Origin: Octopus bimaculoides
Lineage: Eukaryota
DNA: 64,000 bases
Reading direction: 5' to 3'
Assembly: GCF_001194135.2 (NCBI RefSeq)
Contig: NC_068984.1
Coordinates: 101,784,247 to 101,848,246, forward strand
Of the stretch, positions 1,062 through 52,390 are shown piece by piece. The position numbers and the translations under genes were made by a program. Each line of letters begins with the position of its first letter. The stretch's first letter is position 1. The notes under the pieces were generated by a model. It ran no database searches. It saw only the letters and a list, made by a program, of their open reading frames with translations, and was not told the origin of the DNA.

Positions 1062-2305
1062 TGAAGGTGAGTTGAAAAGTTTGTAGACTATCTATGAAGG
1101 AATGGTGCTAGGGCTGTGAAATCTTGCATGCATTATTCCAACTCTTCTTAATAACTGCATCTTTTTCATTCCAGGTTAAATTGACACCTGACTGTTCAAA
1201 AAAAGATTTCAAAAGTAATTAGTAATGCCTTCTCCTAAAAACGGACAAAATTTGGCATTGTGGGGTTATCAAGTACCTGTAGAAAAAGGGTCTGGCCCCC
1301 AAGGACATACATGCTGACATTGCTGTGACATTAGGGGATGACACTCTAGCTTTATCAAAAGTGGGCAGCTGAATTTAGGAAAAGGTGAAAGAGTCTTGAA
1401 GATGACCCAAAGTTTGGACGTTCTGCAGCTGACACCACTGAGGAAAACATTGATAGTGTTCACTACATGGTAATGGATGATAGGTGATTGACTATAAATC
1501 AAATCCTGTGAGAGTTGAGAATATTTTTCACAATGAACTTGGCATGATGAGGGCTTCTGCTCAGTGGGTGCTACGTCTTCTGACACTTGATCAAAAGTAC
1601 ATAAGGTTAATCACATCACAGGAAAATCTGACATTGTTTGAGGCAAATTTGGCTGGTTTCCTTGAACATTTCATCACTTTGAGCCAGAGACGGAAAGGTA
1701 ATTCATGCAGAAGAAACACCCCCTCCTCACCTGCTTCAAAGAAGACCAAAGTTATTTCATCTGCAGATAAGGTGATGGCCTCAGTTTTTTGAAATGCAAA
1801 CGGCATTGTGTTTAATGACTATCTTGAAAAAGAGCCTCACCATCAATGGGAAGTACTATGCCAACTTGCTGAGGCAGTTACAAAAGGCTATGAAGGCTAA
1901 ACATTCAGGAAAACTAATGAAAGGGATCTTGTTTCATCAGGACACTATTCCAGCACACAAGTTCTTGCTTTCAATGGCTGCTGTACATGACTGTGGCTTT
2001 GAACTGGTTGATCAGCCTCCCTATTCACCTGTTTGGCCCCATCTGACTATCATCTGTTCCCCAACATGAAAAAAAACCCCACTTGGTTGGGAACCAGTAT
2101 CACAGTAATGATGATATCATATCTGCTGTTGATGACTTTTTTGACCGACAGTATGAAAACTTCTTCACCAATGGAAACCAAGCACTGCAACACCGATGAA
2201 AGAAGTGTGTGGACTGCAAGGAGGACTATTTTGAAAATAAATCTCATTCAGTCACTTTCCATGAGAATATCTTGGTCAATCTATGCACTTTTTAGCTGAC
2301 CTTCA
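1062..2305 (+). mobile_element. Mariner transposon, full length but degenerate
   Basis: Imperfect TIRs (TGAAGGTGAGTTGAAAAGT / reverse complement TGAAGGTCAGCTAAAAAGT) with TA flanks. Transposase relics WVLRLL, FHQDTIPAH, PPYSP and APSDYHLFPNMKK. Confidence 0.9.
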
Positions 2306-11845: not shown

Positions 11846-13475
11846 CATCATCTGGCATGGGTTGGACGGTTTGACTGAGGACTGGTCAGCCAGAAGGCTG
11901 CACCAGGCTCAATCTGATCTGGCAAAGTTTCTACAGCTGGATGCCCTTCCTAACGCCAACCACTCCAAGTGTAGTGGGTGCTTTTACGTGCCACCAGAAC
12001 GAGGGCCAGTCTGGCGTTTCTGGCAATGACCACGCTCAAAAAGTGTTCAATACGTGCTACTTGCATGGGAGCCAGTCTGGCGGCACTGGCAACGACCATG
12101 CTCAAATGTTGTTTTTCACATGCCACTGGCACATGTACCGGTTAAGCAACACTGGCAATGATCACGCTCAAATGGTGCTTTTTACGTGCCACCGGTACGA
12201 GAGCCAATCCGTGGCCCTGGCAATGATCGCGCTTGGATGTGCTTTTAACATTCCACTGGCATGAGTGCCAAACAGGCGGTACTGTCATCGACCACGTCAG
12301 CGATTTTGATTTTACTTGCCTCAAAAGGTCTTTGCAAGCAAAGTTTATTGTCCAATGAATGAGGGGTATTCATAAGTGGGCTGGTTACACCCACTGGCAT
12401 AGGCCACGGGCTATGTTCTCACTTGGCTTGTCGGGTCTTCTCAAGCACAGCATATCTCCAAAGGTCTCGGTCACTAGTCATTGCTTTGGTAAAGCCCAAT
12501 GTTCGAAGGTTGTGCTTCACAACCTCATCCCAAGTTTTCCTGGGTGTACCTCTTCCACAGGTTCCCTCAACCGCTAGGGTGTGACACTTTTTCACGTGGC
12601 TGTCCTCATTCATTTGCAACACATGACTATATCAGTGCAGTTGTCTCTCTTGCACACCACATCTGATGCTTCGTAAATCCAACTTTTTTCTCAGGGTACT
12701 TGCACTCTGTCGTGTATGCACACTGACATTACACATCCAGCGGAGCATACTGGCTTCATTCCTTGCAAGCTTACACATGTCCTCAGCAGCCACAGCCCAT
12801 GTTTCACTGCCATGTAGCATGGCTGTTCGTACACATGCATCATACAGTCTACCTTTTACTCTGACCGAGAGGCCCTTTGTCACCAGCAGAGGTAAGAGCT
12901 CTCTGAACTTCGCCCAGGCCATTCTTATTGTAGCAGCTACACTTTCAGAGCATCCACCCCAGCTACTGACTTGGTCTCCTAGGTAACGGAAGCTATCAAC
13001 TACTTGTAGTTTTTCTCCCTGGAATGTGAGAGAAGCTGTTCTGTGCACATTTTCAGTGTTTATAGCACCTGGGCATTTGCCACATACAAAAACTATCTTC
13101 CTAGTTAGCCTTCCTTTAATATTACTGCACCTCTTATGTGTCCATAGCTTACACTGGGTACATCTTATGGAGTTTCTACCTATACCTTTTCTACAGATCG
13201 AGCAGGGCCATCTACCTGAAGGGATTTGTGGTTTGTCTGCCTTCCTACTTAGTAAGACTTTGGTTTTAGCTAAGTTGACTCTAAGGCCCTTTGATTCTAA
13301 TCCTTGCTTTCACACCTGAAACTTCTCCACTAGTTCTGATAGTTACTCAGCTATTAGAGCAAAGTCATAAGCATAGAGGAGCTCCTAGGGGCATCGTGTC
13401 TTGAATTCCTTTGTTATTGCTTGGAGGACTTTGATGAATAAACTGAGGACTGATCTTTGGTAGACCCCTACCCGG
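11846..13475 (-). mobile_element. RTE-clade LINE, 5'-truncated (RT 3' half, C-terminus, 3' UTR), degenerate
   Basis: GVYQRSVLS, LYAYD (YADD), FRYLG, LYDACVRTAMLHGSETW, GRGTPRKTW and DRDLWR motifs with in-frame stops. The 3' UTR carries ~55-60 bp tandem units. Confidence 0.9.
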
Positions 13476-14228: not shown

Positions 14229-16418
14229 CTACAAAACATAAGTGATATTGTTAGATACAAAAATATGACATTGTCTGAAATACATAGGAAAACAGATTTT
14301 TTACTTTCTCACATATAAAATACACATAAGAGTCTTTCCATTTTGTCTTTTTAACCCCCAATTTCTTTCCATTCACCCAATCTTCCTTTTTTTTTCACTC
14401 TCTGTGGTCTCGTGTTTCTTATCTCCATGCAATCTGAAGCACTTACACTCCAGTTAAATATATTTCAAGTCCAATATGTCACAATATTTAAGCAATATTG
14501 CCTAAGATAAGAAAAAAAATTTATTTTTTAAAAATGTTAAAAACCATCATCATGGTTCTGTGTAAATTAGGAAACAATGGTGAATGAAAATTTGGTAAAT
14601 AGAATTATAAGCTTTCATCATATCATCTTTTATCTTTTACTTGTTTCAGTCATCAGACTGGGGTCTTGCCAGGACACTGCCTGGAAGAAGAATCTTTAGT
14701 GAAATGGATTGTCCCACCCCCCAGTGCTTATTTTTTTTTCAAGCCTGATGCTTATTCTATTGGTCTCTACTGCCAAACTGCTAAGTTACAGGGACATAAA
14801 CACAAACGCACACACATATGACAAGCTTCTTTCAGTTTCTATCAACCAAATCCACTTACAAAGCTTTGGTTGACCCAGGGCTATAGCAGAAAACACTTGT
14901 CCAAGGTGCCATGCAGTAGGACTGAAACCAGAACTATGTGATTGGTAAGCAATCTTCCTACCACACAGCTATGCCTGCACCTATAAAACATTGGTTTCGA
15001 TTTTGGCACAAGGCCAGTAATTTTGAGGGAAGGGGATAGTGGATTACACCAATCCTACTGCTCAAATGGTACTTATTTTATCAACCCTGAAAGAATGAAG
15101 GACAAAGTCAACTTCAGTGGAATTTGAACTCAGAACATAAAGACAGATGAAATACTGCTAAGCATTTTGCCCAGTGTGCCACAAATTCTACCAGTACATT
15201 GCCTTAATTGACTTTAGCCCATTTTTTTTTCCTGTATGCCCCAATATTAGACTATTTCTATAGTCAATGTAAAAGCTTATGACTCTATTTACAAAAGATT
15301 ATCATCATTATTCAGACTACTCACCCCACAGCTTCTCTGCTACTTTAACAGCCCTCTCTGACCAAATTCCAGGATACCCAACACTTCTCTTCCTTCCTTC
15401 CTTTGCATTCTTCACCCACTATCACCTATTTCCCCTTTTCATGTTTACTTTCCCTTGTGTGTGTGTGTGTGCGCACGCACGTACTTGTATGCCACCATCA
15501 TTATTTAACATCCATATTCCATACTGGCATGAGCTGAATGGTTTGATGGGATCTGACTAACCTGAAGGCTGCACTGGTCTCCAATGTCTACTTTGGCATG
15601 GTTTCAATGGGGAATATCTTTTTTAATGTCAACTACTTAATAGAGTGTATTGGGTGCCTTTTCTTTGTTGGTACTAGCACGAATGAGTCACCAAGTGCTA
15701 TATATATATATATATATATNNNNNNNNNNNNNNNNNNNNNNNNNNNNNNNNNNNNNNNNNNNNNNNNNNNNNNNNNNNNNNNNNNNNNNNNNNNNNNNNN
15801 NNNNNNNNNNNNNNNNNNNNNNNNNNNNNNNNNNNNNNNNNNNNNNNNNNNNNNNNNNNNNNNNNNNNNNNNNNNNNNNNNNNNNNNNNNNNNNNNNNNN
15901 NNNNNNNNNNNNNNNNNNNNNNNNNNNNNNNNNNNNNNNNNNNNNNNNNNNNNNNNNNNNNNNNNNNNNNNNNNNNNNNNNNNNNNNNNNNNNNNNNNNN
16001 NNNNNNNNNNNNNNNNNNNNNNNNNNNNNNNNNNNNNNNNNNNNNNNNNNNNNNNNNNNNNNNNNNNNNNNNNNNNNNNNNNNNNNNNNNNNNNNNNNNN
16101 NNNNNNNNNNNNNNNNNNNNNNNNNNNNNNNNNNNNNNNNNNNNNNNNNNNNNNNNNNNNNNNNNNNNNNNNNNNNNNNNNNNNNNNNNNNNNNNNNNNN
16201 NNNNNNNNNNNNNNNNNNNNNNNNNNNNNNNNNNNNNNNNNNNNNNNNNNNNNNNNNNNNNNNNNNNNNNNNNNNNNNNNNNNNNNNNNNNNNNNNNNNN
16301 NNATTCTACAAAGTATTTTGGAAAAAATGGTAAATCTACAGAGAAGGTAATATTCATCTCAAACAGAATGTAATAAGATAATTAACTTTGGTAGTTAACT
16401 AACAAATCCCCTCTCACT

Positions 16419-16461
<43 letters not shown>

Positions 16462-16556
16462 TGTCTGTGTGCACGCACACAAGATCATCCTCACACACAT
16501 CAAATTAACAAAGCTGCAAGAAAGGAACTCATTCATAATTGTGTAATCTCTATTAC

Positions 16557-16819
16557 CTAATGATGTGTTCTCATTAAATAGGGAGACAAAAGTCCCTTTT
16601 AAATCCCGACAGTATTGCGTGGCTACAATACTGCGAACTGTGTCACATCGATAGAAAGAATGAGTTTCAGTCATACAACGGTAAAGGGCCTTTGCTGCCT
16701 TCTCACTGACTAGTTTGAAGCCAACAGTTCTACTATCTTCTTCAGTTGCTTGATTAATCAGCTGAACAAATACAACACGGTCAGCAAGTGTAGCCTTCTG
16801 CATCATATGGAAATCAACA
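16557..16819 (-). CDS. MYLIP: MYLIP/IDOL coding exon (FERM F3)
   Basis: VDFHMMQKAT...FKLVSEKAAKALYRCMTETHSFYRCDTV...QYCRDLKGTFVSLFNENTSL(G) matches IDOL LYRAITETHAFYRCDTV/RDLKG. TTTTCAG acceptor and GTAAT donor; 263 nt. Confidence 0.95.
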
Positions 16820-17798
16820 CTGAAAATACAAGAAAACAACAGATGTATTATTGAAACATCTAACACTGTTACAGGGTCACAAATTTGCCTGACAAATGTA
16901 ATTGAGTGAATCAAACCTCTCACAAACTGATCCTTATTTCATTCACTGCAGAAAAGATAAAGCTAAGGGGGGGGGGGATCTAAATGATCCCTCCAATGAC
17001 CTTGCACAGTTCCCATCAGCCACATTTCACTATCATGACATATAGCCTCTATTGTGGTCATACTGAGGCCTTCAATGGAGGCTTAGGGCGATTCAGTTGA
17101 ATGACCTGTCTCTTTGAAATGTGTAACTAACCATGTGTACCACTTTTATGGGAGTTATGTTGTTAGCATTGTTCTGCTTGGTGTTTTTCTTTGTGTTTTG
17201 CTTCCAGTTGCCTGGTGCACTCTGTATATATTCTACAGAAGAAGATGAACTCAGAAGTAAACTCATCAAACTTCTGTATTGTACAACCATTACCTTACCA
17301 AGACACATGGTTACATCAAGGCATTCTACTGCGGTATCATCAGCCAACAAAGAAATCATTATGTGGTTGTTTGGCTTACTAGAAATAGCAGGCAAATTTC
17401 CCTTGCCACCTTAATACATTGGACAATGTAGTTCTTGATATGTATACAAAAAGATAGGATGGTCTCAGACAAAATGTCAGGACTGCTCAATGAAGGCTGA
17501 CCTGGGATTAAGCAACAACAACTTCAGTACCAGATTCATCTGTCTCCACCAACTAAATAAACACATGTTCAATACATCATTAGTTATCATTCAATCATAA
17601 ATGACCATAATACAAGCTCTACTGGGTCTCCCCTCAATTAGTCACAAGTTTATTTATTACAATACAGTATAAAGCCTTTTCAAAGTGTTATACAAGACTA
17701 AGTATTTTGTCACCAATACAATCAACAGAAAACTATTAATGTGAACCATCTGAAGAAGGTGACCTGTCTCCAGTCCCACCATTACAACAAGTCAGTGT

Positions 17799-18606: not shown

Positions 18607-19532
18607 TCCTCTCAGGATGACATGTAAACTAGACAGCTCGATTTGTACAACTTTATATATGACAGAAATAAGGCAACATTGTTCACTAGTTAAATGAATA
18701 ATATTTACAGGTGTTTATTTTGTTACTTGCAATTTAGTGTCAAGAACTTTTATAGTGAATCTCTTGAAAAAAAGATAGAATTTGTTCCTATGGATCTGTT
18801 CATCAGCTGAGTTAATTAATTTAAAAAATTTTTCCCAATCAATCAGCAACTGACTAAGCAGCTTTATCAAAAGTGTACTTAATTGCAAAGAGTGGTGATA
18901 TCTCTACTCAAAGTGACTACCATTATAACATATGGTGCTGTATATGGAACAAGGTTCTTTCTACACATCTTGCCACCAGAGAAGACAGAGTCACCAGCCT
19001 TCAACTAGACTTGATAAACAAGTTTGGCTTAAGTTTAATACCACACTCCTTTAAACTTCTCTATTTCTCTTAATTCAACTGTCCCACATTATGAAGATTA
19101 CATATATACACAGACACACAGTAACATATTCACGGCATAACATGTTCGTGCACATACACACATGATTTATGTATTCTGAACAACTTTGTGAACAATGTGT
19201 AGGCTTAAATTGGACATCAACAATCATTTAAAACTACTCATCATTAACAGTAATTAAAGGCCACACATCATTTGCAATAATTTTATATTGTTTGTTCAGG
19301 CCTGTTACTGCCAAATTAACTTATCAGCAAGGTCAAAATATACTTTCCTCATTCTGTGATTATAAATGAATAAAACGGTAATATAATTTGAATAAACGTC
19401 TTTCAGTTGAATTTTTATTTTCTACACATGCACAAAATGTAAAATGATTCTAAGTTTGGTACTTTATTCATGCAACAATAAAAACAAAAGCTACAGAAAA
19501 AGAATAACACAAATTTATAATTAATGACTTAC

Positions 19533-19928
19533 GTCTCAACTTGTATTAAATTTTCATCAAAAATAGTAATGCCTTCAGGTCCAACTCCAATATGAACATT
19601 TTCTCCACTACAGTTCTTGGCTTCATGGAATGATATTCCATAGTTTGGAAGTTCAGCAACTTCTTGCAGCAGCTTGTATTCAGCTTGGGCTGGGTTCAAA
19701 GTTGAAATGCCGGTATGTTGTTCAGCAACTTCATTGGCTAGAGCTAAACCTCCACCAATCTTTTCAACAAGTGTTGTATAGATTGATTCAGTGAACTCGG
19801 TGACAGGGTTTTGATCTAATTTAGACAACTGTGCAAGTAACGCACATATGTTTATACAAGTGGTTTTGTCAGAAACTTGTAATTTCTGACTCATGAGATC
19901 TTTTATAACTTGAAGAGAAAACTGATGC
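19533..19928 (-). CDS. MYLIP: MYLIP/IDOL coding exon (FERM F2-F3)
   Basis: (R)HQFSLQVIKDLMSQKL...AEYKLLQEVAELPNYGISFH...IGVGPEGITIFDENLIQVE(T). TTCTTGCAG acceptor and GTAAGT donor; 396 nt; phases match both neighbours. Confidence 0.95.
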
Positions 19929-25293: not shown

Positions 25294-26472
25294 TCAGGTC
25301 ATCCCATAAGTTCTCTCCGAATTTTGAATAAAGAAAACAAATGATCAAATGTTATATTTAATTGAAATTTAATCATCAATGTACTTTCCCTGATTATCTA
25401 TGATTTCCTTCCATCTATTTACAAGCTTTTTAATCCCATCAATGTAAAACTCTTTTGGTTTCAAAGCGAAGAACTCTGAAATGTCAGTTTCGACCGCCTC
25501 CTGGCTTGTGAAAGTTATGTCCCCCAAATGATTCTGTAAACTATGAAACAAATGGTAGTCTGAAGGAGCAAGGTCGGGAGAATAAGGTGGATGAGGAATG
25601 TTTTCCTAACCAAGCTCTTCAATCTTCTGTGATGTGATCTTTGCAGTGTGGAGTCATGCATTGTCCTGATGAAACATCACTCCTTTTCGATTTACTAAAG
25701 CGGGTCTTTTTTTCTTCAAAGCTTGGTTCAAATGCTCTAATTGCTGACAGTAGACTTCAGCATTGATTGTTGAATTAGGTGGTAACAATTCAAAGTGAAT
25801 TACTCCAATGCAATCACACCAGATAGAGAGAAGAAACTTTTTCCCAAGAAGTTCCATTCTCGGTTGTGGTTGAGCTTTTTCCCCTTTTACCAAGCCACTG
25901 TTTACGACGTCTAAAATTTCGATAAAAGATTCATTTATCGTTACCAGTTACAAGTCAATCCCAAAAGAGTGAAATGAGCAGATATCAACTCAGGATTTGC
26001 AGTTGTTTTCGGAAAATTCATGAAGCACCCATTTTCCAAGTTTAGGAAACTTTCCAAGTTGTTGAAGATAACGATGAACAGTTGTATGGTTTAAAGTAAG
26101 CTTTATTGCCAATTCTTCAACTGATAATGCAAGATTTTCTTCAAGTAACGCCCCAAGGAGCTTATCATCAAACTCAACTGGACGTCCTGTTCGATCTACA
26201 TCTTCAAGGCTGAAATCTCCACTTCTGAATTTTGCAAACCATCTTCTGCAAGTTTTTTCATTCAAGCATTCTTTCCCATAAAGTGAGTGTATGTTTCGAG
26301 TCCCTTCGGCTGCAGAGTTTCCTTTTTTGTACTCATAAAGCATTATGTGCCTCAAATGCTCTTTGGATACAAGTTTTAATCAAAGAAATTTTAATCCTAT
26401 TATCATGTAAAATAATATTTAATTAGTTTAAATGTACGCAAATGCATAAAAATAATTTTAAATTCCATTAGA
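25294..26472 (-). mobile_element. Mariner transposon (second family), degenerate
   Basis: MRHIMLYEYKKG...WFAKFRSGDFSLED..RTGRP, GKWVLHE, FHQDNA and SDYHLFHSLQNHL motifs. TIR TCAGGTCATCCCATAAG follows (TA)n; the other end is not resolved and may lie in the N gap. Confidence 0.88.
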
Positions 26473-36100: not shown

Positions 36101-39100
36101 CAATTTAGATTGATCATTAATGACACCAACCATGTCCAGCTTACCTGAATAGTGGGGGTAGCACAGAGGTACAGAAAGGCTATAAAGCACTGGCATTCAT
36201 CCTCACATTATGAGGTCAATTGTAAAAGGATTGTGGTGTACACAGTGTCAGCTGAGATTTAACCTCATCTTGCTTCCTCCGTCTTCCTCTACCATAGGTC
36301 CCCATAGTGTTAAAACTTACAAACCACTTCCTGGTTGGCACTAGGAAGGACATCCAACCATAGAAACCATGTCAGAACAGACAATGGAGCCTGGTGTGGC
36401 CCCTGGTCTTACCAGCTCTGGTTGAACTGCCCAACCCATACCAGCATGGAAAATGGATGTTGAATGATGATAATAATAATTTAAACAGTATTCTTTTGTT
36501 TCTTAAGGAAAATTCAGACTTTTTATATCTGTATATAAAAGAAAAAGGGATGCCTCCTTCACTTCTGACTTATTTTCTTTCATTATTTATACATATATAA
36601 AGGTGACAAGCTGGCAGAATCATTAGCATACTGGGCAAAATGCTCAGAGGCATTCTGTCCATCTTCATATTCTGAGTTCAAATTCTGCTGGCATTAGTTT
36701 AGCTTTCCATCATTTCAGGATTGATAAAATAAGTACCAGTTAAGTACTGGGGTTGATGTAATCAACTAGCACCTCTCCATAAAATTTAAGCAGAAAGAAT
36801 TATTTATACATACACACATGTATACATTCATATATGTTCTCTACCAGTTATTACATAGTCATAAAAAAAATTTACAGTGTTCATGATAGTAAACATGTTT
36901 ATATTTAAACAAGCTATTTAAAATAGCCACGAAAAGAGGAAAATATACTTTTTAAAGCAGAAAAAAAGAAAGATCAAATAGCGTGACTAACATTCCAAAG
37001 TAGATTACTTCTGGATAATTAGGTCTAAATCAAACCAAAAAAAAAAAAAAACATCTTTGTTGTTGTTGTCGTCGTCATAGTAGTAGCTTTGTTTTTTTCA
37101 TGACCCCTGCTCGAGCTACTTTTAATTATTTCCATCATTAAGAAAGGATAGATTATCACTAATCTTAAAGGTTTTTGCAAATATCTGTAAAGCTATTTTG
37201 ACAATTAGCAATGGATTATCAGATTAAATCCCCCAATAGCCAATCAGCTGAACTCATACGAAACGAGAAGCTAAGGTACATCATAGCTTTACAGTGTTTA
37301 TGTGTGGAAGGGGGGGGGGAGGAGAGAACATAGTTGTATCTCATGTGTGTATGTGTGCATGTGCATGGCTATTTATCTGTCCAGCAAATAGTGTGCATTT
37401 ATGCTAGCTTGCACACGTGATTATGTGGATACTAATTAAGGGAAATTACCTAGGGACGCCATCCATATGAAACAATAACAGACTGAAACTTCAGATTAAC
37501 TTATTATTAATCCTCGAGCTAATGTTTTCATCTGCTTGTGACAAGAGTTAATTCTAGTTTTATTTACAATTTCAGAATCGCCTCCCCAACCACTCTTTCC
37601 ACGATTAGACTTAACGTTAGTCAATGAGCTTATGTTTCTCACTCCTAATTGCAATTTTGTTTTTGTTCACTAAATATTAAATACATCAGCACTCAATAAG
37701 TAATGATGTTTGCTTGTGAATGAAAAGATGTTTACTGTTTGTTTTTCCAACTTGCATGGATTGGGCAGGCTTGCCCTTTTTGAGGTAGTAATTTATCACT
37801 GGATGCTTTTCCTATTGCCAAACCTTACCTGTTTTTCAAGTATGTTATTTAAAACTGAAAGCATGCAATCACCATTCTAGATAAGAATTAGTTAGTTTAT
37901 TTTAGGGAGAATAGATTGCAGCAGGGAACATAACAATTAACAGTTAATATTAGTTGTGCTGGCAAAGCGGCAAGTTGGCAGAATCATTAGCATGCTGGGA
38001 AAAATGCTTAGCAGCATTTTGTGCGTCTTAATATTCTGAGTTCAAATTCTGCTAAGGTTGACTTTGCCTTTCATCCTTTTGGGGCCGATAAAATAAGTAC
38101 CAGTTAAGTACTGGGGTCGATGTAATTGACTAGTCCCCTCCCACAAACTTGCTGACTTTGTGCCAGCATAGAGTGATGTCTGAAACACTGGAATAATTGA
38201 AGTTTGTGCAATTTTATGCTAATCTTGTTCACTTGAAAACCTCTCTCGTGCTCAAATTTTCTATTCTTTGTGAATCAGATTAAGTCTACAGATTCATGTA
38301 ACAACTTGAAGTTTGCATTTAATGGGATTTAATTCCCCACAATACATTGGCTTTTATGTTTACTAACAGATTCAAGTCAGACCTGATATTTACAAATGCA
38401 GGTTAATGCATTATTCTTTTATTCTCTAATTTCATTTACATACTTGCAAATGGTTTCTTTCTATTCTGTCATGTGTATGATTAAGCAAAAGACTAACATT
38501 TTCAAAATTCTTTTAAATAATATTTATTCAATATTTTTCTGCAAGGTCACAGCTGGTTCCTGAGTGAAAATAAATTTTTCTTTTAATTAATTTATGCTGG
38601 AAGTTTTCTATTAACGATCAATGGAAAGAAGTTACTTTTTGTTTTGCTTTTAATTTCCTAATAGCAAAGTAATTTCTCTGGACAATACTGTTTTTGAGCC
38701 TTATGACTCATAGGGTCAGTTACCCAATTTCTAAGGTATATAAGTGAGTGAGATCACAATATTTCCCTTGAATGGGATGTCGGTCCATCACAGAGTTACT
38801 CATTTACAGCTGAGTGGAGTGGAGCAATGTGGAATGAAGTTATTGCCCAAAAACACAATGTACCACTGGTCTAGGAACAGAAACCATGATCTTGTGATCA
38901 TGAGTGCAACATTCTAACCTCTAGGCCACAAACCTTCGCAATTTCCTAATAAAATGTACCAAATTCATACAGCATGAGACTCCCCAATATTTCAAGACTA
39001 AATTCATAGCTGCTTCCTTAAGTAGACAAGCAGATTATTAGCTATTCACTATAATAATTTTGACACTTTTTTTGGATACTTGGCTTTGGGTTAGAGCAGC

Positions 39101-44290: not shown

Positions 44291-44555
44291 TTATAGAAGT
44301 AACAGGAAATATCTGACTAGAATTTATAAAAGTATCAGAAATAACAATAGCACCTATAGAAGTAGTAGGAAACATCTAACAAACACCTATAGAAGTAACA
44401 GGAAACATCTAATTGTATCACTTATAGAACTAGCAGATAAACCTAACTTGGAACTTATAGAGGTAGCAGGAAACATCTAACTAGCATTTTAAAATAGGAG
44501 AAAACACCTAACTGTCACACTTACAGAAGTAGCAAAAAATAACAATAGCATTTAA
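44291..44555 (+). repeat. Degenerate minisatellite, ~32-bp unit
   Basis: About 8 units of cttatagaagtagcaggaaacatctaact. Confidence 0.75.
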
Positions 44556-49441: not shown

Positions 49442-50498
49442 TTAGATATAGATATATATCTGTATATGATGGGCTTCTTTCAGTTTCCACCTACCAAATC
49501 CACTCACAAGGCTTTGGTTGGCCTGGTTTTAGAGTATAAGATGCTGGCGAAAGGTTTCACTCAGTAGGATTGAACCTAAGACCAGATGGTTGCTATGTGA
49601 ACTTCTTAACCACATAACATCCTGTGGCACTATCCTGTAAACAGGATATTAATTTCTTGCCAATGTATGTTTTAAGACAATGCCCTGTCATAATGCATGT
49701 ACTGTGTTCCTGTTTTTGCCTGAAGCTCCATTTAAATGTTATTGCTTTTTATACTCTTACTAAAATGACTGATGTATACTGTAATAATATACAGTCCTAA
49801 TTTTGTTTATATATTTATTTTCAAACTATTTCCTGCTAGTAGTATTAGTAGTAATATTACAATATAGTGCTACTATCTTACATCTTCCTTGCTATTGTTG
49901 CTACAATATACAAACATTATATGTACAAATACATACATATATACATATTTATACACAAATAATATTCATGTATTTTATAATGCCTAAATTCTCCAGCAAT
50001 TGTTGATACTGTTATTCTACCAAGGAGTCAACTTATTCCATTTTCTTTTCTGTATTAGTGATCTTTTGCTAGAGAATTGTGAAAATGCTAATGATATCAT
50101 TACTACTATGAGATTAAACCTATTCTCAAATGCTATTTATTCTGTAATTGAGTCATCCATGAAAGCTTCCAAACAGCTACCTTGTTTTTCACAAGTCAAT
50201 CATAAAATTACAGACATTTCAGCTATGACAATAACCACATAAAACTCAGTTTACTATAAATCTCTTTTGCAGACCCTTATCTTTTTAACTCCACTTAATA
50301 AAACAAAGGCCTTCTCATCATCTGAGATTCCTACAGGCAGCCTGCAATTCAGCCTGTTCAATCAGTTTACAATGCATATCATCACTTGTCTTGATTGTGA
50401 CAAGTTAAAGGCTTTTAGATTTAAAATATTTTTTCTACTATAGGTACAAGCACATTATTTACATTTGACGGATATTTGTCCTCATCTTGTTTGTTGTT

Positions 50499-50544
50499 AA
50501 CACAACATTTCAGCTGATACACCCTCCAGCTTTCATCAGGTGTC
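50499..50544 (-). ncRNA. Minimal type I hammerhead ribozyme motif
   Basis: GACAC-CUGAUGA-A-AGCUG(10-nt loop)CAGCU-GAAA-UGUU/GUGUU: conserved core, stem II, near-palindromic mini stem III, NUH triplet GUU, and a 5-bp stem I (GACAC/GUGUU). Confidence 0.7.
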
Positions 50545-50610
50545 TTTGGGAAATTTCGAACCTGGGTTCTCATTCCTAAGGTATTTTTCGATGTTATTAT
50601 TATAATTCAA

Positions 50611-50682
50611 GTCACTGCCTGGAATCGAACTTGGTATCTTGGGGTTAGTAGCCTGCACTCTTAACCACTATGCCATATGCCC
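50611..50682 (-). other. tRNA-derived Pol III promoter head of the hammerhead element
   Basis: GGGCATA-TGGCATAGTGG (A box)...GTTCGATTCC (B box) at tRNA-like spacing; no intact acceptor stem. Confidence 0.75.
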
Positions 50683-50700
50683 GTGAGCATATTTCCCCAA

Positions 50701-50743
50701 GACACCTGATGAAGGCTGGAGGGTATATCAGCCGAAACCTGTT
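50701..50743 (+). ncRNA. Hammerhead ribozyme motif with a damaged cleavage site
   Basis: GACAC-CUGAUGA-A-GGCUG(10-nt loop)CAGCC-GAAAC. A 3-nt deletion after GAAAC removes the NUH triplet and part of stem I. Confidence 0.6.
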
Positions 50744-52390
50744 AACAACAAACGAGATGAGGACCAATATCCGTCAAATGTAAATAATGTAAATAATGTG
50801 CATAATTCCTCATCTCTTAAATATAGAACTGAATAGGTACAAGGCCTGAAATTTGAGGTGAGGGGACTAGTTGATTACGTTGACCCCAGTGTTTCACTGG
50901 TACTTAATTCATCAACTCCAAAAGGACGAAAGACATAGTTGACCTCGACAGAATTTGAACTCAGAACATAAAGACCAATGAAATGCTGCTAAGCATTTTG
51001 CCTGGCATGCTAATGGTTCTGTCAGCTCACCACCCTTCTTTTTAAATTAACAAAAATAAATGAAACAAAAAAAGGATCTTATTGTTTATTTGCCTTCTTT
51101 TTGTTTTCTGTCCTTGTATTTTTAAACTGACTAGCCAATATCAATTCCATGACAAGATGGTAAAGCAAGAGACTAAATGTACAACAGCTTCTGGTTTCAT
51201 TAACTTTTTGTTGCAAAGTTATAATCTCACTAGAATCCACTTCTTCTATCCTTCCAGAATAAAATAAGTATCAGCAATATATTGGGATGGTTACTAACAA
51301 TTAGTCATATACACATGTAAAATGTTCTGTAAAATAGCTACACATGATTAAAGGTCAGATTACTGTTAGACTTTACTGAGGAAGTTGAATCATTATGAAA
51401 CATTCAACAGAGGAGACACTATGCAGACTCTGCAAACAAAGGCGGATGAGAGGAGTACACATGAATGTCAACCTAAAATCAGTGCATTTACAGTTCCATG
51501 TGGTTAAAATTTCTACAAGCACCAATTGGTAAACTACAAAGGTAGAATGTACTGAGTGACCAAAATGCTGAAGATAATGGTAACAGTTTTAAAAACAATT
51601 TGGGCCGAGCTCAGTGCCAAAGATAATGGTAACAGTTTTAAGAACAATCTTGGAAAAGGCGAATATGACAACCTACAATATTGATGATATTCTTGTAGCT
51701 GAAGTAACAGTGACAGTAAAAGAGGTGAGAGGCCATCTCATAAACTATGGATTGACCATAGAGTCATTGGAATCTTTGGAAGAAAGGCAATACTGGGACT
51801 TGAACAGAATGGAGAGAACTGATCTTCTAGAGGGAGAATTAGATCCTATAGGTGAGTCACGAGTAAAGTAAGTAGGCACTGCTTTCTGTGAGTGGAAAAC
51901 TAAATGGGCCCTACTTTAAATGCAAAACCGTCACACTGACATAAAATATCATTATTTCCAGAAATAAGTCGAAGCCATAGAAATCTAAACTAAATGCCCT
52001 ACCAGGCAGTGTTCAATAGAATGACATCTAAAACTATATTGCAATCGATTCTACTGATTACATGTCCAGTGTAAGAAATTTTTATTTTCAAGGGTCAAAA
52101 CAAATGAATCTGTAAGAAAATGATCAAAAGAAGGGTGAGTTGATATAAGGATTACCTATAAGGTTTAGCAGCTAAAAAGAAATCATTCCATCTACATCAA
52201 TTTCAAACAGACAATGACCAGCAAAAGTTCAACTGAACATAAACCAAATCAGTACCACCAGTTTCAGGGGTCCTTTGACAGTCATCAGTTCCACCTCCAC
52301 CTTCTTCTAATTTAAGTTATCAAAAGAAATATATATTTAATATAACCAAAAGACTTAAACATGGAAATTAGCTGAACTAGGATTGTATGC

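Follow-up and report, generated by a model that had tools for sequence, protein, structure and literature searches.

The 64-kb stretch of Octopus bimaculoides DNA analysed here (the window) includes a decayed copy of an octopus mobile element that is both short and non-coding. We give a probability of roughly 70% to the reading that this element is an octopus SINE, composed of a degenerate tRNA-derived head, a short body and a 3′ module of the type found in Penelope-like elements (PLEs), and that it is copied by PLE machinery. The 3′ module, roughly 170 nt in length, begins with GGTTCGA... and continues through a minimal type I hammerhead and a 3′ domain to a tail that pairs back to form a stem of 8–10 bp. 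The element suggests that SINEs borrow the copying machinery of Penelope elements, and no description of such a partnership was found in the literature.

The insert spans positions 50451–50832 (382 bp) and is flanked on both sides by a perfect 11-bp target-site duplication (TSD), ATAGGTACAAG; the left copy (50440–50450) is an exact direct repeat of the right copy (50833–50843), neither being assigned a strand, and the direct-repeat search detected no other direct repeat across 50300–51000. The insertion lies in the 3′ end of a host SINE on the minus strand (50844–51035), which belongs to an older, unrelated tRNA-type family with five further copies in the window, and the 3′ end of this host extends to the left of the insert as far as about 50425. 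The homologous site GGCACAAGG is present once in these five other copies, which thus provide a paralogous empty site for the insert. A 382-bp insert with an 11-bp TSD in the end of another SINE had been proposed in the original prediction, and both the exact repeat and the five paralogous empty sites bear this out. Within the insert, two inverted arms (50452–50554 and 50691–50790) are 89% identical over 103 nt. A BLAST search of the element against the 64-kb window returned only the self-match, and the covariance model R1 found no additional copy in the window. The window insertion is an old, decayed copy nested in another SINE, the signs of decay being the 11% divergence of its arms, one dead hammerhead and one weakened hammerhead.

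On the minus strand, the insert reads as a full-length direct SINE copy (50451–50690), as delimited by head-to-arm alignment with the related loci L005, L011 and L006. Its 5′ end, GCTCACGGGCATATGG, lies at about 50688–50690 and is shared with L005 and the ORF P0012, in all three cases 13 nt upstream of the A box. A regex for the A and B boxes identified a tRNA-like putative Pol III promoter (50621–50675, minus strand) with an A box TGGCATAGTGG (50675→50665) that matches at 11 of 11 positions and a B box AGTTCGATTCC (50631→50621) that matches at 10 of 11, the two being separated by 32 nt; this is the single match in the window, against 0.005 expected. Thus, the boxes of the tRNA-like head that had been predicted are present and unique in the window, whereas ARAGORN and the Rfam tRNA models are both negative on this head. 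Relaxed thresholds are needed for a cloverleaf to be called (80% for the head of L011 and 60% for that of the window), and of the tRNA features only the promoter boxes and the D-arm are retained. The SINE body (50557–50620, minus strand), which is kept in L005, L006 and L011 and is also found in many ORFs starting with MRTQVRN, ends in GGTTCGAAATTTCCC immediately upstream of the hammerhead. Downstream of the hammerhead, the arm alignment defines a 3′ domain, AACAACAAACAAGATGAGGAC...GTAAATAATGTG (50451–50498, minus strand). The direct copy ends in ...AAATAATGTG at 50451 without the terminal tail and hence cannot form the terminal stem; this tail-less 3′ end recurs in L005 and, at the homologous position, in L003. 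The sense strand of the SINE contains no T4 run, and the first one downstream, a TTTT in the flanking DNA (50423–50426, minus strand), is a candidate Pol III terminator.

A complete minimal type I hammerhead motif occupies 50499–50544 on the minus strand, as indicated by a descriptor match, by the MFE fold of the 46-mer, which yields stems I and II, and by the best R1 match (67.6 bits). It is laid out as GACAC, CUGAUGA, A, AGCUGG-8 nt-UCAGCU, GAAA, UG, UU^ and GUGUU, with a predicted cleavage site (^) between 50504 and 50503. The full descriptor, which requires stem I, the core, stem II, GAAA, the 15.2/16.2 pair and UH, is matched once in the window (minus strand, 50544→50499) and in 0 of 300 simulated windows. 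The hammerhead core together with stem II is found only in the two arms, compared with 0.18 expected per window. Boxes C3-U4-G5-A6-N7-G8-A9 and G12-A13-A14-A15.1 are present as CUGAUGA and GAAA in both arms, and in each arm stem II comprises 6 bp with an 8-nt loop (AGCUGG/UCAGCU in the direct arm versus GGCUGG/UCAGCC in the inverted arm), so that the pairing is kept in both, with the sequences given in the original prediction. The 10.1-11.1 pair is A-U in the direct arm and G-C in both the inverted arm and the consensus, and the 15.2/16.2 pair is UG in the direct arm and CG in 4 of 11 arms and the consensus; A10.1-U11.1 and U15.2-G16.2 weaken the direct hammerhead. Stem I of the direct arm is formed by 5 bp between GUU^GUGUU and GACAC, an unpaired A lies between A9 and 10.1 in all 11 arms, and there is no loop 3. 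A description of the motif as devoid of stems I and III was rejected as an artefact of using the deleted plus-strand arm as the reference, since the minus-strand arm and the consensus show otherwise.

The statistics for this fold are weak. The folding energy does not differ significantly from that of shuffled sequences (z = −1.6 for the 46-mer and −0.4 in context). In the covariation analysis of 11 arms, 79% of the cells are paired, against 21–52% when the alignment is slid, and two pairs show double changes, but 76 of 500 shuffles reach the observed score; the stem II covariation between the two arms, which the original prediction noted could be chance, is real but statistically weak. A W/R × R/Q codon-pair test gave a marginal odds ratio of about 2. 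A comparison with Rfam, foreseen in the original prediction, produced no match to the hammerhead families (type I, II, III, HH9 and HH10) at the gathering threshold or at E ≤ 10. Rfam also misses the intact tandem motifs of L003, which makes its negative result uninformative, as this class is not covered.

The family consensus retains the hammerhead core. Related copies were recovered via spurious ORFs, and most of the family evidence comes from ORF translations and other assemblies, with one copy in the window; the module is carried by 98 cluster representatives and 1837 ORFs. The majority consensus (11 arms, 4 full copies) reads GACAC CUGAUGA A GGCUGG...UCAGCC GAAA CG/UG UU GUGUU, and its CUGANGA/GAAA core, the loss of which had been named as an argument against the prediction, is intact. 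The ORF P0002 of O. sinensis encodes KTPEEGWRVYQPKRCVNNK, which is compatible with CUGAAGA...CAGCCGAAACGUUGUGUU, and has at the 15.2/16.2 position an Arg codon compatible with CG. A large sister family has codons compatible with the core in 92% of its members, and among octopus-like sequences the individual core codons are retained in 74–94%. Several relatives have mutated cores, i.e., UUCGAAGA in L001, UUCAUGA in L005 and CCGAUGA in L006, suggesting that selection, if any, acts only on source copies.

Adjoining the head of the direct copy is an inverted, 5′-truncated partner of the 3′ module with a complete 3′ end (50691–50832, plus strand), recognised by its 89% identity to the direct arm. 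It contains a defective hammerhead copy (50701–50743, plus strand; R1 score 55.7 bits), identified by arm alignment and folding, which retains CUGAUGA, stem II and GAAA. A 3-nt deletion after GAAA (GAAAC, the gap and then CUGUUAAC, versus GAAAUGUUGUGUUAAC) removes the 3′ strand of stem I, and the plus-strand hammerhead is therefore dead. Further along, comparison of the arms revealed a 9-bp duplication of an internal motif (50781–50801, plus strand), which reads GTAAATAAT GTAAATAAT GTG, the motif being single in the direct arm, P0001 and L004. The inverted second hammerhead of the original prediction is thus real as to its core and stem II, whereas stem I is lost and GTAAATAAT is doubled; of the hammerheads described as paired, one is structurally complete, with weakening changes, and the other is without stem I.

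The GTAAATAAT/(AAATAATGT) motif is internal, as complete copies run about 31 nt further. The minus-strand order of A/B-box head, body and hammerhead had been predicted correctly, but the "(AAATAATGT) tail" is not the terminus. The 31-nt terminal tail, CATAATTCCTCATCTCTTAAATATAGAACTGA (50802–50832, plus strand), is found at only one end of the window insertion. It follows the arm in P0001 (as HNSSSLKYRTI), L001, L004, L006, L009 and L011, and L001 and L004 have it at both ends, whereas the window insertion, L005, L003 and L009 have it at a single end. A 10-nt perfect inverted repeat, GAGATGAGGA (50754–50763) and TCCTCATCTC (50807–50816), forms a predicted 3′-terminal stem (50754–50816, plus strand). 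RNAalifold, applied to 8 copies from 3 families, gives a consensus 8-bp stem with one compensatory change from a G-C to an A-U pair, the stem strands of the module being AGAUGAGG/CCUCAUCU.

As judged from its sequence, the 3′ module fits the minimal type I hammerhead of PLEs. The traits of the latter include an unpaired base between A9 and 10.1, the lack of loop 3 and a stem I of 4–5 bp (PMC4209133). Features common to the octopus element and PLE minimal hammerheads (Cervera & de la Pena 2014, PMC4209133; Lunse et al. 2017) are the unpaired A9/10.1 base, the short stem I, the CUGANGA and GAAA boxes, and the lack of both helix III and loop 3, the consensus having a self-complementary ACGU at 15.1–16.1. 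Opposed pairs and tandems are frequent in both, and individual copies are heavily decayed; dual minimal hammerheads on opposite strands, 100–700 bp apart, have already been reported for PLE-rich genomes. The assignment to a minimal type I hammerhead of PLE type, made in the original prediction, is upheld by the extra base, the missing loop 3, the consensus CG at 15.2/16.2 and the short stem I. In contrast to the hammerheads of PLE pseudo-LTRs, the octopus motif forms part of a non-coding unit of roughly 270 nt that has a fixed 5′ end and a Pol III tRNA-like head. Unlike PLEs, the octopus unit has no attached RT/GIY-YIG ORF. Stem II comprises 6 bp in octopus, compared with 7–8 bp in the schistosome families.

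The architecture of the insertion points in the same direction. PLE insertions have an adjacent inverted, 5′-truncated copy and a tail of 30–40 bp at one end (PMC8557442). The inverted truncated partner and the one-sided tail are shared between the octopus element and PLE insertions (Evgen'ev & Arkhipova 2005; Craig et al. 2021, PMC8557442), in agreement with the Penelope-style inverted arms that had been proposed, and the partial tandems of PLEs are matched in the octopus sister family; however, the octopus insert corresponds to a SINE transcript and not to the mRNA of a PLE. In Octopus vulgaris, 30 recently active Penelope families have been described (PMC13282606). An inverted or tandem partner adjoins the unit in the window, L005, L006, L003, L004, L001 and L009, and the length of the inverted partner varies from about 48 nt in L005 and 75 nt in L006 to 142 nt in the window.

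In the mechanism that we propose, Pol III would initiate at GCUCACGGG, which precedes the A box by about 13 nt, and the transcript would run through the whole element into flanking DNA up to a T-run. A PLE reverse transcriptase/GIY-YIG endonuclease, the putative partner, would recognise the 3′ module, and the linear uncleaved RNA would be copied by target-primed reverse transcription at a staggered break, giving rise to the 11-bp duplication. From the opposite end of the break, synthesis may be primed again, on the 3′ module either of that RNA or of another, and the abortive product would account for the adjacent inverted, 5′-truncated partner as well as for the one-sided tail. The hammerhead would be inherited from the PLE 3′ end. 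Most likely, it is part of the fold recognised by the RT, or acts only weakly as a dimer, and most likely it is not needed for cutting each template. The fixed 5′ ends 13 nt before the A box, together with the read-through of the cleavage site, favour linear uncleaved Pol III templates.

The strongest competing explanation, that the element is an ordinary LINE-mobilised SINE whose hammerhead-like motif is a non-functional relic and whose inverted partner stems from LINE-type twin priming, is unlikely. No PLE partner has been identified: two 20-kb related loci (L003 and L004) contain no PLE ORF, the only RT there being LINE-like. LINE RT fragments are common nearby (12632–13048 in the window, 2061–2579 in L003), and this explanation also accommodates the weak covariation and folding statistics of the hammerhead. 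Neither exact nor degenerate DNA scans of viral, metagenome and prokaryote collections, nor a back-translated scan of metagenomes, gave a match, in collections apparently free of cephalopod DNA. The element shares no sequence with the LINE fragments of the window and has no poly(A) or microsatellite tail, whereas two of its features, the 31-nt tail at a single end and the minimal hammerhead that includes an extra base, are specific to PLEs. Moreover, twin priming inverts the upstream part of one RNA, whereas here each arm is a copy of one and the same 3′ terminus, and the window insert is bounded by a 3′ end on either side; twin priming of a single RNA was rejected on these grounds.

A retrozyme-like route, in which a hammerhead-cleaved, circularised RNA undergoes rolling-circle reverse transcription, is less probable still, although tandem units do occur among the relatives. 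At L003 (10027–10380), a sister family forms 2.3 head-to-tail units of 129 nt, each with an intact minimal hammerhead, the 129-nt tandems being confined to this sister family; tandem units are found in many ORFs (e.g., P0003, P0010, P0011 and P0013), and PLE-derived animal retrozymes have been proposed (bioRxiv 10.64898/2026.07.22.740005). In contrast, the window holds one direct and one inverted copy without a tandem, and copies run from a fixed Pol III-type 5′ end past the cleavage site to a fixed 3′ end, whereas a circular or cleaved template would yield permuted ends; in vitro cleavage by minimal hammerheads is also poor. The circular-RNA route of the original prediction is accordingly not favoured, given the unpermuted ends, the defined 5′ start and the read-through of the cleavage site. 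Metazoan non-LTR retrozymes (Cervera & de la Pena 2020, PMC7229834; Li et al. 2026 preprint) are likewise non-autonomous, hammerhead-bearing and proposed to depend on PLEs, but they are tandem repeats of 170–400 bp with classical type I hammerheads and circular RNAs and without a tRNA head, whereas the octopus window copy is non-tandem and its ends are unpermuted. The Sm-alpha and Sj-alpha elements of schistosomes (Ferbeyre et al. 1998; Laha et al. 2000) are short, high-copy retroposons that also combine a Pol III promoter with a hammerhead. The hammerhead of Sm-alpha is canonical and cleaves efficiently, with helix III and loop–loop contacts, whereas the octopus motif is minimal and of PLE type; Sm-alpha is typically tandem, cleavage separating its promoter from the rest, whereas the octopus element is dispersed, with TSDs and inverted partners.

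That two truncated PLE ends flank an unrelated tRNA-SINE by chance, through nested insertion, is very improbable, even though dispersed single or opposed minimal hammerheads have previously been read as truncated PLEs. A single 11-bp TSD encloses the whole unit, with no second TSD around the head. Head, body and arm are contiguous in L005, L006 and L011 (DNA) and in P0071 and P0012 (ORFs), i.e., in independent copies, whether or not an inverted partner is present, and this recurrence indicates a SINE family rather than a chance juxtaposition, as expected for the Pol III-box-headed SINE that had been predicted. The junction is constant, exactly at the 5′ end of the head in five ORFs (P0047, P0052, P0148, P0176 and P0181), whereas the truncation point of the partner varies, both in these ORFs and in the DNA loci L005, L006, L003 and L009. 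Single TSD, contiguity and constant junction together largely refute nested insertion. A foldback or MITE-type DNA transposon with 103-bp terminal inverted repeats, suggested by long inverted repeats inside a direct duplication, is refuted by the one-armed L011 (many copies are one-armed, and L003 carries tandem arms) and by variable partner lengths with inner ends that differ between copies, and it is further at odds with the asymmetric arm ends (31 extra nt on one), the inconstant TSD length (about 7 bp in L005 and 11 bp in the window insert) and the internal Pol III promoter predicted from the boxes.

SINEs are defined by their borrowing of LINE machinery. The preferred reading, a SINE with a PLE-type 3′ module, follows the logic of the 3′ tails shared by LINEs and SINEs (Ohshima & Okada; Kajikawa & Okada 2002), in that a promoter derived from a small RNA is combined with the 3′ module by which an autonomous element is recognised, whereas the putative partner in octopus is a retroelement of another class, whose RT is telomerase-like and whose endonuclease is of the GIY-YIG type. 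The consequence for the window locus alone is small. If the reading is correct, a SINE that borrows a PLE 3′ end would extend the SINE logic to that other class. At roughly 270 nt, it would serve as a natural reporter of priming by the PLE RT/EN at both sides of a break, a value that rests on its sharp 5′ ends, variable inverted partners and often one-sided tail, and it would help to show if the minimal hammerhead acts as a ribozyme or as a fold that the RT binds. Many dispersed minimal hammerheads that are annotated as truncated PLEs would also be reinterpreted. More tentatively, Pol III-driven SINEs that parasitise PLE RTs via a hammerhead-bearing PLE 3′ end may form a widespread, unrecognised class, integrating by two convergent target-primed reactions on the 3′ modules of SINE RNA, which would explain many of the thousands of orphan minimal hammerheads, dispersed or opposed, in animal genomes. 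If so, the octopus element would represent the first clear SINE–PLE partnership and a small, tractable substrate for PLE integration.

The insert (50451–50832) arose by retroposition, which left an 11-bp duplication, and is a composite of a full-length SINE copy on the minus strand (50690 to 50451) and, on the plus strand (50691–50832), a partial, inverted copy of the SINE 3′ module, i.e., the arm and terminal tail. The repeat ATAGGTACAAG, at 50440–50450 and 50833–50843, is the sole direct repeat found in 50300–51000; its two copies lie 382 bp apart, and the DNA around the insert is a reverse-oriented host SINE. By sequence match, this host SINE recurs at about 8370, 14984, 36790 (36609–36790), 38150 (37973–38150) and 61239. 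In an alignment, the homologous ...TTGGCACAAGGCC... is present once in each of these five copies, which makes the 11-mer a genuine target-site duplication within the 3′ end of the host, as originally predicted for a 382-bp insert within the end of another SINE. The host family, tRNA-type and unrelated to the insert, has six copies in 64 kb (50425–51035 and the five other sites) and a 3′ end reading ...CCTTGTGCCAAAATTTGAAACC(ATT)n. Within the insert, 50452–50554 and 50691–50790 are inverted copies with 89% identity over 103 nt, confirming the predicted second copy on the plus strand. Neither self-comparison nor the covariance model found another copy of the element in the 64-kb window, and this locus is an old, decayed copy.

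Other features of the window include ORFs matching Pfam FERM_C and FERM_M (16414–16923 and 19529–19894, minus strand), probably exons of a minus-strand FERM-domain gene, and Mariner/Mos1-type transposase remnants at 25990–26355 (−) and 1794–2069 (+) (HTH_48 E = 4e-20, partial DDE domain). A tandem repeat made of 5.9 copies of a 33-bp unit, with about 70% matches, occupies 44292–44486, and several N runs (2014 N in total), flanked by (TA)n, are assembly gaps.

Read from 50690 to 50451 on the minus strand, the element starts with GCTCACGGGCATA and contains an A box, TGGCATAGTGG, followed after 32 nt by a B box, AGTTCGATTCC, then an A/T-rich body ending in GGTTCGAAATTTCCC, and finally the 3′ arm. 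The head is the only match in the window to an A/B-box regular expression, where 0.005 are expected. The head was not recognized by tRNA models, and ARAGORN folded a cloverleaf for the head of L011, a related genomic copy, only at an 80% threshold and for the window head only at 60%. Thus, the boxes of the predicted tRNA-like head stand whereas a cloverleaf does not, and "tRNA-like" here means promoter boxes and a D-arm. The SINE 5′ end is constant: 13 nt precede the A box in the window copy, the related locus L005 and the transcript of P0012 (a related O. bimaculoides protein), as expected for a Pol III start. The minus strand of the element is free of T4 runs, the first being 25 nt downstream (50426 to 50423).

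Minimal type I hammerheads are without helix III or loop 3, and have a self-complementary 15.2/16.2 pair, a stem I of 4–5 bp, a long stem II and an unpaired base between A9 and 10.1 (PMC4209133). The minus-strand arm (50544 to 50499) reads GACAC / CUGAUGA / A / AGCUGG-AGGGUGUA-UCAGCU / GAAA / U G / U U^ / GUGUU, an exact fit to these traits. The plus-strand arm by itself suggests a motif without stems I and III, a reading superseded by the traits of Penelope-like element (PLE) hammerheads as seen in the minus-strand arm. A minimal-hammerhead descriptor had a single hit in the window, at this site, and no hits in 300 Markov-simulated windows, and a looser rule, core plus stem II, found the two arms only, with 0.18 expected. 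Stems I and II are recovered in the MFE fold of the 46-mer, the folding energy of which is not better than that of shuffles (z = −1.6), and in a 106-nt context the alternative pairing GACACC/GGGUGU competes with the hammerhead fold. Such instability has been reported for minimal hammerheads, for which a dimeric mode of action is proposed.

The predicted pairing of hammerheads holds for the core and stem II, since the plus-strand arm retains CUGAUGA, the extra A, GGCUGG/UCAGCC and GAAA, but not for stem I. The plus-strand arm reads GAAAC---CUGUUAAC, versus GAAAUGUUGUGUUAAC in the minus-strand arm, a deletion which takes away the stem I 3′ strand, and by sequence this copy is thus dead. The surviving motif is weaker than the consensus, with A10.1-U11.1 for G-C, and U-G for C-G at 15.2/16.2. 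A search with Rfam hammerhead models (E ≤ 10) gave no match in the window, a negative that carries no weight because Rfam also misses structurally intact relatives. An 8-nt palindrome, UGUUAACA, at 50494–50501 (−) and 50740–50747 (+), overlaps the stem I 3′ strand and starts 2 nt past the predicted cleavage site; it is found in octopus-like copies, is absent from a sister family, and could mediate RNA dimerization.

The original prediction took GTAAATAAT to be the tail, which is not the case: this sequence is internal, and the plus-strand arm runs 31 nt further (50802–50832, CATAATTCCTCATCTCTTAAATATAGAACTGA) up to the duplication. In the direct arm, the last bases are ...AATAATGTG. Within the 31-nt tail, TCCTCATCTC pairs with GAGATGAGGA (50754–50763), and RNAalifold on eight copies gives an 8-bp consensus stem, AGAUGAGG/CCUCAUCU, from arm to tail, with one compensatory pair (G-C to A-U) and two wobble changes; by this comparison the 3′ stem is conserved. 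Four composites have the tail at one end, on the partner side in the window, L005 and L003 and on the direct-copy side in L009, and two (L001, L004) have it at both. For the tail-less end, the window, L005 and L003 all share one homologous nucleotide.

DNA scans of viral, metagenome and prokaryote genome collections for the element were empty. Relatives were sought by arm translations, gene callers being expected to leave spurious ORFs on SINE copies. A 50-aa ORF across the direct arm matched two proteins. In P0001, from Octopus bimaculoides, the arm goes on as ...NVNNVHNSSSLKYRTI, the same 31-nt tail in direct orientation. P0002, from O. sinensis, is an exonised copy, the KTPEEGWRVYQPKRCVNNK of which is compatible at the codon level with CUGAAGA ... 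CAGCC GAAA CG UU GUGUU, an intact motif with canonical pairs. The gene models of P0002 (LOC115224785 isoform X2) and P0012 (dystrobrevin beta isoform X1) open with SINE-derived MRTQVRNFPKTPEEGWRVYQPKRCVNNK... and MPMGIWHSGEGWRVYQPKCCVNNKQDEDKYPS, respectively, i.e., SINE copies were exonised or mis-annotated as first exons. The assignment of the window to an octopus is based on the named matches P0001, P0002 and P0012. A profile search gave 98 clusters among 1.84 billion representatives, and 1837 ORFs among 90% clusters, a sample skewed to copies with this frame open. These ORFs form two groups, one octopus-like and one a large sister family, QTPEEGWRTYRPKRCGNNNKDEDNSPKTLNDKNHQASSQKFRQ, often in tandem with a period of 43 aa (129 nt). 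An alignment of the loci L005, L006 and L011 to the window copy extends from GC(Y)CACGG(G/A)CATATGG through head, body and arm, so that the predicted SINE, judged from these alignments, is a real family.

The intact minimal hammerhead is the majority consensus of the four full copies and also of 11 arms from three families. Judged by codons, compatibility with the core is 92% among sister-family sequences and 43% among octopus-like representatives, with each core codon retained in 74–94% of the latter. Individual copies show decay, with a core of UUCAUGA in L005 and CCGAUGA in L006. In L001 (768–931), both arms have UUCGAAGA/UUUCGAAG in place of CUGAUGA, and the sharing of this change by the direct and inverted arms suggests that a source copy or subfamily lost the core beforehand and still transposed. 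Across the 11 arms, 79% of cells are paired versus 21–52% when slid; the double changes are U-A to C-G at 10.4/11.4 (four cells) and G-C to A-U at 10.1/11.1 (one cell). The covariation score was matched by 76 of 500 shuffles and is not significant, leaving covariation among these arms suggestive; a codon-pair test on 133 ORFs gave an odds ratio of ~2.

The inverted partner, from these comparisons, is a regular insertion by-product and does not belong to the transcribed unit. On the outside it ends, in every case, in a 3′ end, and the point of inner truncation differs between loci: the window partner measures 142 nt, that of L006 75 nt and that of L005 about 48 nt, and that of L003 comprises 2.3 tandem units. 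In five more ORFs (P0047, P0052, P0148, P0176, P0181), the partner abuts the 5′ end of the head exactly. L011 is a plain copy with a tail and no partner. In L003 (ENA ERZ21867824, contig ctg121048l; 10027–10380, +), the partner of a sister-family SINE consists of 2.3 head-to-tail 129-nt units, two with an intact minimal hammerhead (CACCUGAAGAAGGCCGG...UCGGCCGAAACGUUGUG). Such tandems also occur in P0003, P0010, P0011, P0013, P0027, P0031, P0040, P0090 and P0093, and could arise by rolling-circle or slippage copying. L003 has another decayed arm copy (1–113), and 2 kb downstream of this copy a LINE-like RT ORF (2061–2959) with the same orientation.

PLE insertions, as described by Craig et al., are strongly 5′-truncated and often partial tandems, often directly adjoin an inverted 5′-truncated copy, and carry a 30–40 bp tail, often at one end only (PMC8557442). 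Cervera and de la Pena read opposite-strand minimal hammerhead pairs 100–700 bp apart as truncated PLEs (PMC4209133). All of these features are present here, to which the octopus element adds a Pol III head and a fixed 5′ end. A PLE partner is plausible, since octopus genomes have recently active Penelope families (PMC13282606); no PLE was found in two 20-kb related loci. The literature includes PLE minimal hammerheads, schistosome Pol III SINE-like elements with hammerheads, animal retrozymes proposed as PLE dependants, and "short non-autonomous Penelope elements" in butterflies. In the literature searched, no description emerged of a tRNA-headed SINE that carries a PLE 3′ module, and there was no match for cephalopods; the family may have been described earlier as an unclassified octopus SINE.

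The fixed 5′ end, A/B boxes and absent internal T-runs suggest that the template would be a linear Pol III transcript. From the architecture, both 3′-OH ends of a staggered break would prime on 3′ modules; one reaction would reach the RNA 5′ end while the other aborts, and the two cDNAs would then be joined. The shared traits point to a PLE RT/GIY-YIG endonuclease as the enzyme. Copies always span the predicted cleavage site on both sides in unpermuted order, and cleavage thus cannot be required for a productive template. A more likely role for the hammerhead is as one element of an RT-recognized fold, or as a weakly active, dimer-dependent processor, and in the sister family the tandem 129-nt units leave room for a retrozyme-like side pathway.
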